A stretch of 64,000 nt of DNA from IMGVR_UViG_3300022921_000002:62001-126000; one strand, 5' to 3'; positions 482-60,114 are shown, counted from the first letter of the stretch. The notes: generated from the sequence alone by a model not told the origin. Program-made: numbers and translations.

Positions 482-1854
482 TAATCATTACTCCAATCAT
501 ATTTAACAAGCTCAAAGTTGGTCCGTACTTTATCGTTTTCCAATGTATGCTTGGTTGTAAATACAAGATACCTACCTGATAGCTGTTGATGGTTATTAGA
601 AGTACCTAAAGCATCAAATCCTTGAACTGTAAGATCAATTAATTGACCAGGCATAATATCCATTCGGCCTGTTAATGATGCCGATACTTTAGTGTTGTAT
701 AAATGGTGCCTGTATGCTATTCGGTTTGAAACTAAATCATCAAGTCTTTGGTCAGATGCCAATTCACGTGAAGTAGCATAAGGTCCGGTAAAATCACGGA
801 ATGCAAGAAACCGTGGACCGTTGTCAATTCTAAATGTTTCTTCAGCAAATTCTCTAGAATGTGGAAAATCAATTTGGCCTCTTCGTGCCTGAACTCCTGA
901 CATATCAACAAACTCAGCTTCTTCGGTATACTTATATGTTGATTCAGTATAGTTGTGGTTTAATATATCAACTACACAAACCGTACTTGCATATCCGCCT
1001 GATTTTATATCTTTACCAATATCACTACCTCTTGAATTAATAGTGATATATTCAATACGATTAAGTTGCTTTTCAGGTTCAGTAGGATCATATGTTGCAT
1101 TAGGTGAATAAAAGAATTTTTGTATTACGTCATCTGCTTCAACTGATTCTTTAATTAAATATTCATCAGTCACAAAAAAGTAATCAGTTAAATTTTCAAA
1201 GAAACGATAAGTCTGTGAATTTGCTTCACCATAAGCACGTCGAGCAAGGAACAACATTGTTTCCGACGGTGTGTAATGCGGGATAGCTAAATTGTTTAAA
1301 CCAATTGTAGGTTGTATTGTAAACTTTCGGCTTTCATTTGTTGCAAAATTAACTAATGGAAATTTAGCAGTACCATATGGGAATGTTCTGCTTCCTTCAT
1401 TTCTAACAGCAGTGCCAAGTGTTGCGAAATAATTTCTAAACGTATATTCAACAATTTGGTTTATTGATTTATTGGCAAACCCTTCTTCAACATCCGACGC
1501 AACGGCTGCCGAATAAGTAACTGCTGATATAAAATGAATATTATACCGAACACCATTCATACTTTCAGTAGGTACTAAATTATCAATACGAATAACCTGA
1601 CACGCCAAATCATATTCAGTATCAAGGTCGTGGGATACAATTTTTAAAATTAATTGTTCTTCGCCAAGTAATGGTGTCTTGTCAAGGAAACCAACGGTGT
1701 CTAGGACAGCGGCTACACCACTCCATGAAGTCATACCCATCGACTGATTGATTTCAATACCATCAATCATCCCGGCGATATTTTCATCAAGGTTTGTGTA
1801 TTTGTTTCTTAACGTAAATGAAACAATCGTATATGATGATGGATTAAATGCCAT
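481..1854 (-). CDS. Baseplate hub protein, gp27-like
   Basis: 457 aa, lies between gp53 and gp5; N-terminal ...SGVAAVLDTVGFLDKTPLLGEEQL and C-terminal LSGRYLVFTTKH resemble phage hub proteins. Confidence 0.65.
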   Translation of the reverse strand: MAFNPSSYTIVSFTLRNKYTNLDENIAGMIDGIEINQSMGMTSWSGVAAVLDTVGFLDKTPLLGEEQLILKIVSHDLDTEYDLACQVIRIDNLVPTESMNGVRYNIHFISAVTYSAAVASDVEEGFANKSINQIVEYTFRNYFATLGTAVRNEGSRTFPYGTAKFPLVNFATNESRKFTIQPTIGLNNLAIPHYTPSETMLFLARRAYGEANSQTYRFFENLTDYFFVTDEYLIKESVEADDVIQKFFYSPNATYDPTEPEKQLNRIEYITINSRGSDIGKDIKSGGYASTVCVVDILNHNYTESTYKYTEEAEFVDMSGVQARRGQIDFPHSREFAEETFRIDNGPRFLAFRDFTGPYATSRELASDQRLDDLVSNRIAYRHHLYNTKVSASLTGRMDIMPGQLIDLTVQGFDALGTSNNHQQLSGRYLVFTTKHTLENDKVRTNFELVKYDWSND

Positions 1855-34538: not shown

Positions 34539-35130
34539 ATTTCATTCCATTATACATATCAATTGGTGCAGTGCCATTATAAGGATTGGCAATTGAGTTT
34601 ACTAATCCGTGTTCAAACGTATTAAATTCAATACCTTCATGGACAAGAAAACGATCTATACCTGCGTACTTTCTCATAAAGTAATCTTTATTTGACATAA
34701 AGTGATCCCAGATATGATTCTGTTCACCAGCAGTCCATGTGATTACTGAACTATTTATGTGAACATCATAAGCATGAGGTGCCATGTATAAATCGTCTTT
34801 CCAATAATCTTTAATGATTGTTAACCCATCCCAATTCAACCATGGGCGCGGATCAGCTTTAATATCCATGTCTAAATCAAAGAATAAACATTTACCTCTG
34901 ACTGGAAAATCTTTACTAAACATTGCAAGTTTATTCCACCAAAATCTAAGTGATGGTTTTTTGAAACATGGAATACACTCAATCTCAACATTCAACGGAT
35001 TATCAGTATAGCACAAGTATTGAGAATTAGGATAGTATTCTCGTAGCTGATCTCTCAATCTGTTAACGTGTTCAGGGTCGTACTTGTCACCATGTTTCAC
35101 AAATATAATATTATCGGTCATTAATTGCAT
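34513..35130 (-). CDS. GT8-like glycosyltransferase
   Basis: KHGDKY, WWNKL, FFDLD, INSSV. Confidence 0.75.
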   Translation of the reverse strand: MQLMTDNIIFVKHGDKYDPEHVNRLRDQLREYYPNSQYLCYTDNPLNVEIECIPCFKKPSLRFWWNKLAMFSKDFPVRGKCLFFDLDMDIKADPRPWLNWDGLTIIKDYWKDDLYMAPHAYDVHINSSVITWTAGEQNHIWDHFMSNKDYFMRKYAGIDRFLVHEGIEFNTFEHGLVNSIANPYNGTAPIDMYNGMKYELPRNTL

Positions 35131-36211
35131 TCCTCAATAAGTTCATAATTTTTGTAACTGCATTCCTGCTATTACGGTTAGACAGGTTTAATATTTTTAG
35201 TCTATTCATTATATCTTCTAATACATCTTTTGATAACAAATTAATATTCCAATTTTCAGTATGCTGCCGTCCTGCTCTATCATATGCATTTATAAACGCG
35301 CCAAAACCATTCCACTCCGCATATTTAAAAAACAAATCAATATTTTCGGCATTGACTTTCATAAGAGTTGAATTAACTTTAATGTTTTCAGGACCTAATA
35401 CATCTTTAAACTTTTGAATGTTATCCATTGTTTCATTATACTTACCGCCAATTCTAATCATATCATATTCCGATTCAACAACAGTATCTAATGAAACTGA
35501 AAGACTAATGTTGTTTTCTTGGCACATCCTTAAAACTTTTTTATTAAATACACTACCGTTAGTACAGATTTGTACTCTCATCTCAGGATTAATGTCGGCA
35601 ATCAACGCACAAAGTTTATATAATGCTTTATGAGAAAACGGTTCTCCACCAACAAATCTTATCTCTTTTAGGTGTGGAATAAACTCGACAAACTGTTCAA
35701 GCAATTGTTCTAGGTTTTCATCATTATCAAACACGTTTGGATCATATTGTTTAAGATCTTTATCGCGTCCTAACATATGTTTTGATGATAATTCGCCAAA
35801 GCACATTGGGCACGCCATATTACACAGATTACTAATTTCAAATTCAAAAACTCTAGGCCATGAGTTAGCATCCATTGCGTGTTCTAATCTATCTCTGCCA
35901 ACATTATAATCATATTCAATAATAGGTGGTGTTTCACCTTTATCAATTCTTTTTTGACAAGCAGCCTGACAACCTGCACTTAATTTATTCTCAAGGAAGT
36001 CATCTTTATAAGTGTTGTTTAATTCACCAAACCAATAATCTTTTAAACCAAACTGATCTTTTTTCCATATTTTCATTTTACGGCTAAAGCAGCAAGGATG
36101 CATCCCGCCGTTTCTTCTTATTCGCATATGATTAAATGCGGCATAGCATGAGATAATTTTATGTTCTTCGGGTATAGTTCGTTTACTTTGAAATAAATCC
36201 CACTTATTCAT
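35111..36211 (-). CDS. Radical SAM protein with N-terminal twitch/SPASM-like cluster
   Basis: CNMACPMC (CX3CX2C), GGEP; N-terminal C...PCC...C. Confidence 0.9.
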   Translation of the reverse strand: MNKWDLFQSKRTIPEEHKIISCYAAFNHMRIRRNGGMHPCCFSRKMKIWKKDQFGLKDYWFGELNNTYKDDFLENKLSAGCQAACQKRIDKGETPPIIEYDYNVGRDRLEHAMDANSWPRVFEFEISNLCNMACPMCFGELSSKHMLGRDKDLKQYDPNVFDNDENLEQLLEQFVEFIPHLKEIRFVGGEPFSHKALYKLCALIADINPEMRVQICTNGSVFNKKVLRMCQENNISLSVSLDTVVESEYDMIRIGGKYNETMDNIQKFKDVLGPENIKVNSTLMKVNAENIDLFFKYAEWNGFGAFINAYDRAGRQHTENWNINLLSKDVLEDIMNRLKILNLSNRNSRNAVTKIMNLLRNAINDR

Positions 36212-37415
36212 TATCTTTGTATTCCTTCAAATATGGAGCCAAATCCCATATGTCTTCATTATTTTCACGTGCCACTAAACAAAAGTCAATCCATTCAACC
36301 ATTCTTTCTTGTATCTCTGCCTTTTCGCCATTCCATTCTTCTTCTTGTGGTACAACACTTAATACGTTATTAGTATTACTCAAATCAAGTTTTGGGTTTC
36401 GCCAATAAAATTTATCGACTTGTTCAAATTTAGAATTAAGATATTCAAATAGTTTATCAATACCTTCTTTTTGGTGATGATCCTCTAACCAAACAGGTGA
36501 ACAATATTTTGGAAATGTAACAAGGTTTGCCATACTTACACGAGGCACACCAGGTACATCAATAAAGTAATCAATCAATTCTGGTAAGTGCATCCAATTA
36601 TAAATTGAGACCGTTGCAACAACTATTACGATGCGTCCTTCGACAGCGTGGTACCGATTGATATTATTTATTGTGCGTTCAAAGTTACCGCCACGGATCC
36701 AATCATATGTTTCGTGTACTCCATCAATACTTGCTTGAATGTGTACTTCTTCAATCTGATGTAAAATATCAATAACAGTATTAGTAACCAATTGAAAGTT
36801 AGTACAAATCTCAACACGGCATTTAGGATTTGTTTCCGCAACCTTTTTCAATATTTTTATATTGTTTGGGTCAGCAAATGGTTCACCACCTTTAATGGTT
36901 AGGTGCTGTAAATGTGGAACAAGATCAAGTACCTTATCAACATCGGCGTCAGTCATCTTATACATATCAGTGTGGAATTTATGATTTTGGTTTCGCCAAT
37001 CTAAACCAGACTCCACCGCCATTTTTTCATATGGTGCCCACTTTGACGAATACTTACCTGAACAGGTTACGCACATTTGGTTACAGATATTACTTGTTGT
37101 AAGCTCAAGAAACCTTATTGGTGTTACCTCAGCGGCAACGTCTTCTTCATATGTTGGAAATTTAAAACGGTTGTAAGTATCAAACCGAGCAAGGCGCCCT
37201 GCATCCCAATGGCGCCAACAGACATCACATTGAGGCGGGAATTTCTTTTCTTTAAAATCTGCACGGATTTGGTTGTATATATCACCGTTAAAGAACTCAG
37301 TTAAATCAGGAACATCTTTAATATGTGATACCGCAGTGTTATCACCGGCACAGCATAAGACAATTTCTCCAATAGGATTGATTGTCAATCCAGTTTCAGG
37401 TACCATACATTTCAT
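36204..37415 (-). CDS. Radical SAM protein with N-terminal twitch/SPASM-like cluster
   Basis: CNQMCVTC, GGEP; N-terminal C...LCC...CDVC. Confidence 0.9.
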   Translation of the reverse strand: MKCMVPETGLTINPIGEIVLCCAGDNTAVSHIKDVPDLTEFFNGDIYNQIRADFKEKKFPPQCDVCWRHWDAGRLARFDTYNRFKFPTYEEDVAAEVTPIRFLELTTSNICNQMCVTCSGKYSSKWAPYEKMAVESGLDWRNQNHKFHTDMYKMTDADVDKVLDLVPHLQHLTIKGGEPFADPNNIKILKKVAETNPKCRVEICTNFQLVTNTVIDILHQIEEVHIQASIDGVHETYDWIRGGNFERTINNINRYHAVEGRIVIVVATVSIYNWMHLPELIDYFIDVPGVPRVSMANLVTFPKYCSPVWLEDHHQKEGIDKLFEYLNSKFEQVDKFYWRNPKLDLSNTNNVLSVVPQEEEWNGEKAEIQERMVEWIDFCLVARENNEDIWDLAPYLKEYKDNE

Positions 37416-41066: not shown

Positions 41067-41438
41067 ATGGCTTATGTCAACGCCTTTGGAGTGGAGATGA
41101 AAACTATGGCAAAGAAAGAAATAACAGTTGATGCTGAAGCAGCAGCTGCACTCGACACAAATAATGACGGTCATATCTCGGCAGAAGAGCTGAGTATGGA
41201 GTTGGAATTTAAACGCAAGCGCCTTGAAGATCAAGATGCTCAACGAGATGCAATGCGTAAAATGACTTGGTTTGCATTGTTTGGAATGTTATTGTACCCA
41301 GTAGGTATTGCTATAACATCATGGTTAGGATTAGATGAAGCATCAGGATTAATTGGAGATATTGCACCGACATATTTTGTTGCAATTTCTGCACTTGTTT
41401 CTGTTTTCTTTGGTGCTAACGCATACAGTAGTAAGTAA
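41067..41438 (+). CDS. EF-hand plus 2-TM holin-like protein
   Basis: Canonical loop DTNNDGHISAEE; two TM helices; late promoter; second in-frame start at 41106. Confidence 0.6.
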   Translation: MAYVNAFGVEMKTMAKKEITVDAEAAAALDTNNDGHISAEELSMELEFKRKRLEDQDAQRDAMRKMTWFALFGMLLYPVGIAITSWLGLDEASGLIGDIAPTYFVAISALVSVFFGANAYSSK

Positions 41439-41441
41439 AAC

Positions 41442-41476
41442 AAAAATAGGGAGGCTAACTTAATAACCTCCCTATT
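41442..41476. terminator. Hairpin terminator between convergent units
   Basis: 10-bp stem AATAGGGAGG/CCTCCCTATT; T-tail on the minus strand. Confidence 0.7.
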
Positions 41477-41567
41477 ACTCGGGTCTTGTATGTGGACTTC
41501 GGGCTGTGTGTTACACCTCTCCCAGGCTGTCCCTACCTATCTGGTTTTCACGTCACCAGAATTCCTT

Positions 41568-41634
<67 letters not shown>

Positions 41635-41644
<10 letters not shown>

Positions 41645-41802
41645 TTTCTTGTTATAAGATCAAGAACAATGCTCAACTCATATATTGATTTATCTAAAAC
41701 TAAATGAGCAGTTTTATCATCATTCTTTTTCTTTTCTTCGCGAAGAAACTCTAACCTTACCTTTATATAGTTTTCTGCTTCAGGTTTGTTTCCTCTACGC
41801 AT
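41635..41802 (-). CDS. Small hypothetical protein between tRNAs (55 aa)
   Basis: MRRGNKPEAENYIKVRLEFLREEKKK...; SD AAGGA; stop overlaps the tRNA-Pro 5' end. Confidence 0.5.
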
Positions 41803-41819
41803 AATATATCCTTTTTATT

Positions 41820-41893
41820 TGGCAAGGGTGGTAGGAATCGAACCCACACCAACGGGTTTGGAATCCGTTGTACTGCCATTATACTACACCCTA
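41820..41893 (-). tRNA. tRNA-Trp(CCA)
   Basis: Cloverleaf with TTCCAAA anticodon loop, GTGGG-TTCGATT-CCTAC T-arm, G discriminator and CCA; mismatches at pairs 1-72 and 31-39. Confidence 0.88.
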
Positions 41894-41901
41894 TCAAACT
41901 C

Positions 41902-42277
41902 CTTAATACTGAATAGTAGTCTTAACTTAGTCCCTCACCAGGATTTTACGGGTTCGGTTGCTAGCACCTACCTACCTGTTACGTTTCTTTGCTCGTACTA
42001 TGCAGTATTAAGAAGTTTTCGTGGGAGGGACTTTCTGCAGTGCCCCTCCCCTTATTTGCATTTTACGTATGCAACAACCGACTGGGTTTTTTTACGGTAC
42101 CAGTTCTTTTTACCGACCTATATGTCCGACGCGCCTCGAACCACATATAGGGTTTGCTTGGGTACGTTCGACGTGATTGTCAGGCTTTCCCCGTGTGCCT
42201 AATAAAGAATGAGTTCGTTACCGTCATGCTTTTTTACCCGAAGGTGATAGCGTCGTGGCCTATTCCTCATTCCTTAT
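41902..42277 (-). ncRNA. Candidate structured non-coding RNA(s)
   Basis: At least six helices, a C(UUCG)G tetraloop, no credible minus-strand ORF; starts right after an early promoter. Confidence 0.55.
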
Positions 42278-42283
42278 ATAAAC

Positions 42284-42312
42284 AATATAACTGATTCTAT
42301 AGTAAATGTCAA
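42284..42312 (-). promoter_or_regulatory. Early promoter with TAGAATCAGT spacer (copy 3)
   Basis: TTGACA-17-TATATT driving the ncRNA/tRNA block. Confidence 0.85.
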
Positions 42313-42315
42313 TAG

Positions 42316-43026
42316 TTATTTGAAGTTTTTTTGTTTCCAAAACATTTTTTTGTACCGATCTACCCACATTGTTGCTAGTTTATTAACAAACTTTTTATGT
42401 GCGGATTGGTCTATATGATGTTGTTCAGATTTCCATGATTCTCTTTTAAAAGGAATAACTTGTACAAGTGGTGTTCCTTTTTTAATTATAACAGGTCGAC
42501 CTGTAAAGTTTCTAAAAAAGAATGGCAAGTTAACTTGATTGTTTTTATACTCATCGGTATCAACAATTGCTGTTTGGAAATAAACACCACTTAATTGTAA
42601 CGTAGGATCATTTAACATTGGTGTAAATAAACAACTATAACCTGGTGGTGTTTCAATTATAAAATGTTGATTGTATTTGAGTACCATTGCAGGTTCAGTG
42701 AAATACGGATGGCCGTTAACTTGATTAGTATTGTGGTCGGTAATTAAATTTTCCAAACCGTCATTTGACCATGAGGCTTCCCATTTGGGTTTATCATTTT
42801 CAATAGAACCGACAAGCATAAGATCACAGTGTGCAGTAATGGTATAACCTGCAGTCATTGCGTCAAGAAACGGAATACATTTTTTGACGGACCCAATTTG
42901 TACTCCTTCTATAACAGGAGATATCTTTTTAAACCAACTTGGTATTGTTTTGACTGCAGGTTTCGGATATTCACTTGCATCGGATAAAAACTCATCAACT
43001 GAAAATTTAATCCGTTTATCTTTCAT
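42316..43026 (-). CDS. Hypothetical protein, possibly dUTPase-like beta fold
   Basis: KKCIPFLDAMTAGY, IETPPGYSCLF, IKKGTPLVQVIPFKRE. Confidence 0.5.
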   Translation of the reverse strand: MKDKRIKFSVDEFLSDASEYPKPAVKTIPSWFKKISPVIEGVQIGSVKKCIPFLDAMTAGYTITAHCDLMLVGSIENDKPKWEASWSNDGLENLITDHNTNQVNGHPYFTEPAMVLKYNQHFIIETPPGYSCLFTPMLNDPTLQLSGVYFQTAIVDTDEYKNNQVNLPFFFRNFTGRPVIIKKGTPLVQVIPFKRESWKSEQHHIDQSAHKKFVNKLATMWVDRYKKMFWKQKNFK

Positions 43027-43039
43027 AATATAATATCCT

Positions 43040-43504
43040 TTATTTTTTCATTTTAGCGGCTGCTTTATCAACTTCCTCTTGTGATACAACACCTTCAGAT
43101 AACAGACGTGCTCGGTTTGTGTTATGAGCTGCTTGTGTGTCATCTTTTGATCCACCTGTATATGGTACAGCATGACCTTCACTAATCATAATAGCAGTTA
43201 CCATACGACCATCTTCAGCAATAAAATCACCGAGGATACGACCAAACTTACCCTTCATATCTTCACCGTCTTTTGCAGCAAATGTTTTAAGTGTAGTTGT
43301 TTTGCCAAGGATGCCTTTTAGTCTATTCTTTGCGGCTAATCCAAATACCTTTTCAACCTTATCGGATGTGCGTGACTCAGGAGTATCAATACCCATAATA
43401 CGTACTCGCTCATCTTTCATCCAAATACCAAATCCTAGATCAATGTCTACATCCACTGTATCACCGTCCACGATTTTAGTTACGTGTGCTTTATATTCAT
43501 ACAT
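43040..43504 (-). CDS. Thermonuclease (SNase-like)
   Basis: IVDGDT, RVRIMGIDTPE, GKFGRIL. Confidence 0.88.
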   Translation of the reverse strand: MYEYKAHVTKIVDGDTVDVDIDLGFGIWMKDERVRIMGIDTPESRTSDKVEKVFGLAAKNRLKGILGKTTTLKTFAAKDGEDMKGKFGRILGDFIAEDGRMVTAIMISEGHAVPYTGGSKDDTQAAHNTNRARLLSEGVVSQEEVDKAAAKMKK

Positions 43505-60085: not shown

Positions 60086-60114
60086 ATAATAACTGATTCT
60101 AAAGCATTTGTCAA
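60086..60114 (-). promoter_or_regulatory. Early promoter with TAGAATCAGT spacer (copy 4)
   Basis: TTGACA-17-TATTAT; spacer identical to copy 1. Confidence 0.85.

Follow-up and report, generated by a model that had tools for sequence, protein, structure and literature searches.

A conserved structured RNA with self-complementary loops located beside tRNA genes in apparently T4-like aquatic phages

Organization of the tRNA-associated locus

The analyzed stretch of DNA (hereafter, the window; 64,000 nucleotides, bases 62001-126000 of the 221,447-bp IMG/VR virus record IMGVR_UViG_3300022921_000002, with coordinates counted from its first letter) harbors a non-coding unit on the minus strand, in which a sigma-70-like promoter is followed by about 380 nt of structured RNA, tRNA-Trp, a 55-aa ORF, tRNA-Pro, a conserved 3' module and an intrinsic terminator (Table 1). 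The genome has 37.5% GC, and the closest cultured relatives of nearby proteins were found in the T4-like phages Pelagibacter myophage HTVC008M and Methylophilales phage Melnitz, while the tRNA-Pro gene also resembled that of Pelagibacter phage Mosig. The neighboring genes code for a 236-aa protein (phrog_7084/PF19541-like), two adjacent radical-SAM proteins (phrog_14086), a staphylococcal-nuclease homolog (PF00565) and a convergent 123-aa protein, which showed a weak EF-hand match below the Pfam cut-off, has a C-terminal half that looks hydrophobic, and ends just beyond the terminator hairpin of the RNA unit. The genome also carries, outside the window (C1:142772-143124, plus strand), a permuted, two-piece tmRNA gene of the alpha-proteobacterial type (tag ANDNYKPSGFALAA).

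Table 1. Features of the non-coding unit and its surroundings in the window.
Feature	Coordinates	Strand	Details
Radical-SAM proteins	35111-37415	-	two adjacent genes
Convergent ORF	41067-41438	+	123 aa
3' module	41437-41567	-	hairpin CUGG-UGACGUGAAAA-CCAG; element GGGAC-AGCCUGGGAGAGGUGUAACACACAGCCCGAAG-UCC
Intrinsic terminator	41476-41445	-	followed by a U-run
tRNA-Pro	41568-41644	-	UGG
55-aa ORF	41635-41802	-	with a Shine-Dalgarno sequence
tRNA-Trp	41820-41893	-	CCA; 2 nt downstream of P-d
P-d with module A	41896-42018	-	stem 42018-41996/41918-41896, 23 bp with one mismatch; 77-nt interior
Hairpin in module A	41968-41956	-	GGU-GCUAGCA-ACC
Conserved core	42014-42161	-	about 145 nt
Joiner J	42022-42015	-	ACGAAAAC
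P-c	42050-42042/42031-42023	-	9 bp; 10-nt loop with CUGCAG at 42040-42035
PK2, S2	42074-42069/42061-42056	-	6 bp
PK2, S1	C42080 G42079 with C42067 G42066	-	two canonical pairs
P-b	42104-42100/42085-42081	-	5 bp
PK1	42114-42111 with 42099-42096	-	GGUA with UACC
P-a	42151-42143/42125-42117	-	perfect 9-bp stem; tip CGA-GGCGCG-UCG
Accessory 5' subdomain	42153-42203	-	AACGUACCCAA after the small hairpin; GUACCC at 42161-42166
Small hairpin of the subdomain	42181-42170	-	GAC-AAUCAC-GUC
AGGC/GCCU hairpin of the subdomain	42200-42197/42185-42182	-	loop ACACGGGGAAA
P0 (5'-terminal hairpin)	42204-42277	-	stem 42275-42266/42213-42204, 10 bp (AAGGAAUGAG/CUCAUUCUUU) with G42273.U42206; ACC-UUCG-GGU at 42245-42236
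Promoter	42284-42312	-	TTGACA-17-TATATT; start inferred near 42277
Antisense ORF	41786-42202	+	138 aa
236-aa gene	43026-42316	-	phrog_7084/PF19541-like
Staphylococcal-nuclease homolog	43040-43504	-	PF00565

The promoter matched 11 of 12 consensus positions, and about a dozen near-identical copies (TTGACA-N6-TAGAATCAGTTATATT) were present in the genome, for example at window positions 60114, 61035, 28205 and 27340 on the minus strand. The conserved spacer extended well beyond the two hexamers, suggesting a phage-specific early promoter class or an additional factor-binding site. The first-pass annotation had described the region 41902-42277 as a highly structured stretch that looks more GC-rich than its surroundings, has no credible ORF and heads the tRNA operon, and base-by-base inspection confirmed all the helices it listed, including the G.U pair of the 10-bp helix that is valid only on this strand. 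However, the P-c stem, given as 7 bp, was found to be 9 bp, and the long arm, given as 17 bp, extended to 23 bp. The region has 45.5% GC, and its longest same-strand ORF is 27 aa. A 23-aa ORF starting at AUG 42269 was rejected as a small protein, as its Shine-Dalgarno sequence abuts the start codon and the frame is not conserved, with the hairpin interior differing by indels in a close relative. The 138-aa ORF on the opposite strand, which spans tRNA-Trp and most of the RNA, is an artifact of the GC-rich structured region. The folding energy of the 392 nt was -111.5 kcal/mol (z = -3.45 against shuffles), which is only suggestive; the decisive evidence came from covariation in homologs.

Homologs and covariation of the conserved core

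Searches against Rfam 15, both of the whole window at gathering scores and of 41300-42500 at E up to 10, revealed only tRNAs, and similarly permissive searches of 18 related loci gave only tRNAs and a tmRNA elsewhere. ARAGORN also detected only the flanking tRNAs. RNase P RNA, tmRNA and group I intron, considered owing to the size and some look-alike motifs (GAAAGUCC, ACAGAA-like), were rejected for lack of any model match. Comparison by blastn with 50,697 phage records gave only tRNA-Pro hits and nothing for the core. The neighboring 236-aa protein led to two short contigs, L082 and L083 (related loci are designated here by L numbers), with proteins 96% and 72% identical, which carry diverged copies of the RNA with visibly compensatory changes. 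In L082, a second copy of the promoter and a 108-aa gene lie between the 236-aa gene and the RNA (760-1150, plus strand), pointing to a promoter duplication or cassette insertion; the same 108-aa gene precedes the RNA in L088 and L099. A partnership of the RNA with the 236-aa gene was rejected, since 78 loci with relatives of this gene lack the RNA; in L109 and L122 such a gene lies downstream of the core, which was taken as coincidence of the neighborhood.

Sequence patterns derived from the conserved stretches identified 22 viral loci, and a second pattern avoiding the first motif identified 57, while 56 of 80 metagenome loci were confirmed as members by the covariance model R1. In all, the core was found in more than 110 viral and metagenomic contigs (65 distinct sequences), all apparently from T4-like aquatic phages. 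One contig carries a T4 gp32-type gene (L100), and two others, L097 (6549-6943, minus strand) and L102 (6787-7181, minus strand), carry permuted alpha-type tmRNA genes (tag ANNNFAPSGYALAA), with Rfam alpha_tmRNA and tmRNA_permuted matches in L097. A pattern scan of 185,579 species genomes gave 26 hits, of which only three were real. All three were contigs of one metagenome bin, 'Rhodobacteraceae bacterium Water_Bin34' (FZLS01000043, 46 and 92), with three different variants of the RNA at coverages of 8.6, 5.4 and 64, and are very probably mis-binned phage contigs. In the genome of the window the core is single copy (129 bits, E = 1e-34). Model R1 found nothing in HTVC008M, Mosig and Melnitz, indicating that the RNA is dispensable for this phage type.

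The core is composed of an A-rich joiner, hairpin P-a, a pseudoknot PK1 (GGUA with the UACC that follows the 5' strand of P-b), hairpin P-b, a compact H-type pseudoknot PK2 (S1 CGNN/NNCG interleaved with S2), hairpin P-c with a 10-12-nt loop, and the joiner ACGAAAAC. On 37 distinct sequences, with both pseudoknots written in, 94.3% of cells were paired as against 36-46% when the partners were slid, and 18 of 34 pairs changed on both sides. On 65 distinct sequences, the nested helices gave 95.0% paired cells as against 33-51% for slid partners, and 16 of 26 pairs changed on both sides, although this alignment was fitted to the model and hence leans slightly toward it. In neither case did any of 500 shuffles reach the observed values, and across the alignments analyzed 14-18 pairs showed changes on both sides. 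P-a, P-b, P-c and PK2 are thus supported by covariation, although in the subgroup of the window S1 of PK2 has only two canonical pairs. PK1 is invariant, so covariation neither supports nor contradicts it. A scan that left GGUACC out of the pattern found no new loci; GGUACC is therefore invariant and is equally consistent with the intramolecular PK1 as with a self-complementary site.

An explanation at the DNA level was also considered, in which the palindromes GGTACC, CTGCAG, TGTACA and GCTAGC would be protein-binding or recombination sites, or parts of a small mobile DNA cassette, with the RNA structure as a by-product. The loops do look like restriction sites, the element occupies different loci, and modules are shuffled between phages. 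However, many G.U pairs (for example, 24 at columns 150/166) would be A.C on the other strand, which fixes the transcribed strand and argues for RNA rather than DNA. In addition, compensatory changes preserve pairing and not sequence, the palindromes change while keeping self-complementarity, whereas a protein site would keep its sequence, and the element always lies in the sense orientation of a transcription unit. This explanation is hence very unlikely, though not excluded by experiment.

A catalytic or ligand-binding RNA, i.e., a new self-cleaving ribozyme trimming transcripts next to tRNAs or a riboswitch aptamer, is suggested by the compactness of the core, its two pseudoknots and its many invariant unpaired bases (GGUACCG, AAACCC, AUAAGGGG and ACGAAAAC), and small ribozymes may occur next to phage tRNAs. 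This also appears unlikely, though not excluded by experiment, as no resemblance to any ribozyme or riboswitch family in Rfam was found even at E up to 10, there is no recognizable expression platform, nothing in the sequence points to a cleavage site, and the position relative to tRNAs and genes is not fixed.

Interchangeable peripheral domains and genomic contexts

In agreement with the first-pass annotation, which inferred one or several novel non-coding RNAs heading the tRNA operon, of the kind represented by GOLLD, ROOL and the T4 stable RNAs, homologs with abundant compensatory changes exist. However, the region is modular, and only the core is shared by the whole family. A hairpin (P0) always precedes the core, but it is of several unrelated kinds. 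The stem AAUGAG/CUCAUU of the window is kept in L082, L109, L122 and L200 with different interiors. In most marine contigs, the hairpin is formed by the last 25 nt of an upstream ORF (..FDNDWD*) and is kept even where the ORF is absent, while in others the core abuts a tRNA 3' end (L097). The accessory 5' subdomain was conserved in seven distinct contexts, including the window, and its small hairpin changes in a compensatory way (GAC/GUC, AGC/GCU, GCAA/UUGC), but it is absent from most family members. It ends in a conserved GUACCC, which could compete with the P-b loop UACC for the GGUA strand of PK1 to give an alternative pairing, seen only in members that have this subdomain.

Downstream of the core, AAAC of the joiner pairs with a downstream GUUU to open P-d (z = -3.2 in the window), whose interior is one of at least four unrelated modules (A-D). 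Module A of the window is nearly identical in L082, L090, L112, L125 and L131 although their cores differ, and in L125 the C.U mismatch of the stem is a C-G pair. Several members (L109, L118, L123, L132 and L136) have no P-d, L101 has two P-d modules in tandem, and in L122 the order is module C, tRNA, core. The 3' module (z = -4.0) was found in 13 distinct variants, always ending in a terminator, with compensatory changes in its helices (GAUC/GAUC to GGAC/GUCC; UAGG/CCUA to UGGG/CCCG). In L099 and L196, it follows P-d directly with no tRNA between, so that in the window, and in L088, L089 and others, the tRNAs sit inside what is elsewhere a continuous non-coding unit. In L131, L173, L199, L222 and L231, tRNA-Trp lies at the same distance from the core, about 121 nt. 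The 55-aa ORF had no Pfam or PHROG match and appears to be a recent insertion peculiar to this phage, as the two tRNA genes in L199 and L231 start about 79 nt apart with nothing between them.

The association with tRNAs is an enrichment and not a rule. A same-strand tRNA was present within 400 nt of the core in 32 of 77 distinct contexts, which is well above what chance placement would give, with only four tRNA or tmRNA genes called in the 221-kb genome. In the remaining 45 contexts, the element lies between two protein genes with its 3' end touching the Shine-Dalgarno sequence of the next gene, which also fits a cis role. The element could possibly be a processing or stabilizing module, or a translational regulator, of polycistronic early transcripts, with the long, near-perfect P-d duplex acting, for example, as an RNase III site, or the fold controlling the Shine-Dalgarno sequence that follows. 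In most contexts, it lies between two co-oriented ORFs, with the 5' hairpin overlapping the last codons of the upstream gene and the 3' end (AGUUUGGAG) supplying the Shine-Dalgarno sequence of the next. However, the same core also stands at the end of a transcription unit before a terminator with no gene behind it (L099), between two tRNAs (L132), directly after tRNAs (L097) and ahead of tRNAs (the window). The downstream genes differ between loci, P-d and the Shine-Dalgarno contact are absent in several members, and neither the invariant unpaired nucleotides nor the palindrome-switching loops are explained by a processing site. A cis-acting role is therefore rather unlikely, although it is not excluded by experiment.

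The occurrence of the same promoter type in front of the RNA in L082, L089 and L200, together with the terminator, is in agreement with a stand-alone gene. It is inferred from position only that the unit is transcribed early as one precursor, that RNase P cleavage at the 5' end of tRNA-Trp leaves P-d with a 2-nt tail as the 3' end of an RNA of about 380 nt, and that the 5'-terminal hairpin and the closed P-d stem protect the ends. Three salt-marsh metatranscriptome runs contained the sequence as contigs, but these covered 5 kb around the region at similar depth (28-58), with the RNA region only 1.3-2.5 times higher, which DNA carry-over could explain; hence, they do not prove transcription.

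Self-complementary loops and comparison with known RNAs

The P-c loop reads CA-CUGCAG-AAAG in 110 loci, CA-CUCGAG-AAAG in 4 and CA-CCUAGG-AAAG in 4. When the hexamer was treated as three pairs, it was self-complementary in 195 of 195 cells, and two of the three pair positions changed on both sides, including the two central adjacent bases, which cannot pair within one chain. The P-a tip was likewise always palindromic, with AA-UGUACA-A (9-nt loop) in the majority, U-GGAUCC (7-nt loop), GGCC, GUAC, UCGA, ACGU and UUAA in other lineages, and G-GCGC-G in the window. The P-a and P-c variants combine independently, GGAUCC occurring with both CUCGAG and CUGCAG, so each loop matches itself and not the other. 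The P-d modules add further such loops, namely, GCUAGC in module A of the window and GGG-[CAGGCCA/CAGAUCA/AACCGGA]-CCU in modules C and D. The same criterion was used by Kretsch et al. to support the intermolecular bridges of OLE and GOLLD, where loops switch between GGCC, GAUC and AGCU, or between GC and CG (PMC12286853). However, the rarer P-c variants occur in only four loci each, some of which may be closely related, and several P-a tips, as well as P0 tips, are spacer-less perfect palindromes, which could arise from the way hairpins are created by mutation rather than from selection for kissing.

Taken together, the best-supported reading (probability of roughly 0.6) is a stand-alone, trans-acting phage RNA of unknown function that self-associates, with self-association inferred from sequence alone and neither expression nor processing shown. 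The folded RNA is inferred to display self-complementary loops (CUGCAG in P-c, the P-a tip and GCUAGC in module A), each pairing with the same loop of another copy, so that the RNA forms a dimer or a closed multimer. By analogy with GOLLD and ROOL, it would act in trans during infection, for instance, as a scaffold or container connected with tRNAs or ribosomes.

GOLLD (RF01998) and ROOL (RF03087) are large ornate RNAs of phages and prophages that form RNA-only homo-oligomeric cages. The present RNA resembles them in being phage-encoded and enriched next to tRNA genes, which in those RNAs sometimes sit inside a linker and here sit between P-d and the 3' module. It also resembles them in joining a conserved part to variable parts, in having several pseudoknots and no partner protein gene, and in its symmetric loops that switch between palindromes, the criterion used for GOLLD L21a. 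It differs in that neither family model matched, in its hosts, which are aquatic T4-like phages related to pelagimyophages, and in its size, the core being about 145 nt and the whole RNA of the window about 380 nt as against probably about 580 nt for ROOL and more than 800 nt for GOLLD; moreover, oligomerization is here only inferred. OLE RNA, a dimer with a symmetric kissing loop (L9.3), shows comparable switching between GGCC, GAUC and AGCU, and GGCC, GAUC and CCGG appear in the 7-nt loop of P-d modules C and D, but OLE is a bacterial (Firmicutes) RNA that works with membrane proteins, is not phage-borne, and shows no sequence or structural similarity. The species 1 and 2 RNAs of phage T4 (rnaC and rnaD, annotated at 70908-71171 next to tRNA-Arg) are analogous in position, being small stable RNAs co-transcribed with the tRNA cluster and released by tRNA-processing enzymes, but they are 119-139 nt and lie at the 3' end of the cluster. 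Model R1, run with filters off on T4 69500-73500, gave a best score of 5.4 bits (E = 0.43), which is noise, and to our knowledge there is no report that these RNAs self-pair through palindromic loops. The packaging RNA of phi29 (pRNA) appears to work as a ring built by intermolecular loop-loop pairing, but it uses two different, mutually complementary loops, belongs to a packaging motor that T4-like phages do not use, and has no similarity in sequence or fold.

A more far-reaching possibility, which remains tentative and is less likely than not, is that the RNA is the founding member of a third class of phage RNA-only quaternary assemblies, after GOLLD and ROOL. It would be a small unit of about 150-400 nt with two or three different symmetric kissing loops, building closed rings or cages inside cells infected by abundant marine T4-like phages, with tRNAs embedded in its precursor and swappable P-d modules decorating the assembly.

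The family is absent from Rfam 15, although it may be among the 10,006 unnamed candidate RNAs computed from IMG/VR (PMC10690425). Stretches of 150-400 nt in more than 100 viral and metagenomic contigs are currently either regarded as intergenic or wrongly called as small ORFs, as exemplified by the 138-aa antisense ORF, and the family thus adds a missing annotation. Large RNAs that assemble without protein are known from only a few families, none of which has an assigned function. The RNA described here would be a compact new family, with clear covariation and several candidate symmetric contacts, from phages related to those that infect the most abundant marine bacteria, and its repeated placement beside or around tRNA genes offers a second, independent case for asking why phages couple such RNAs to tRNAs.
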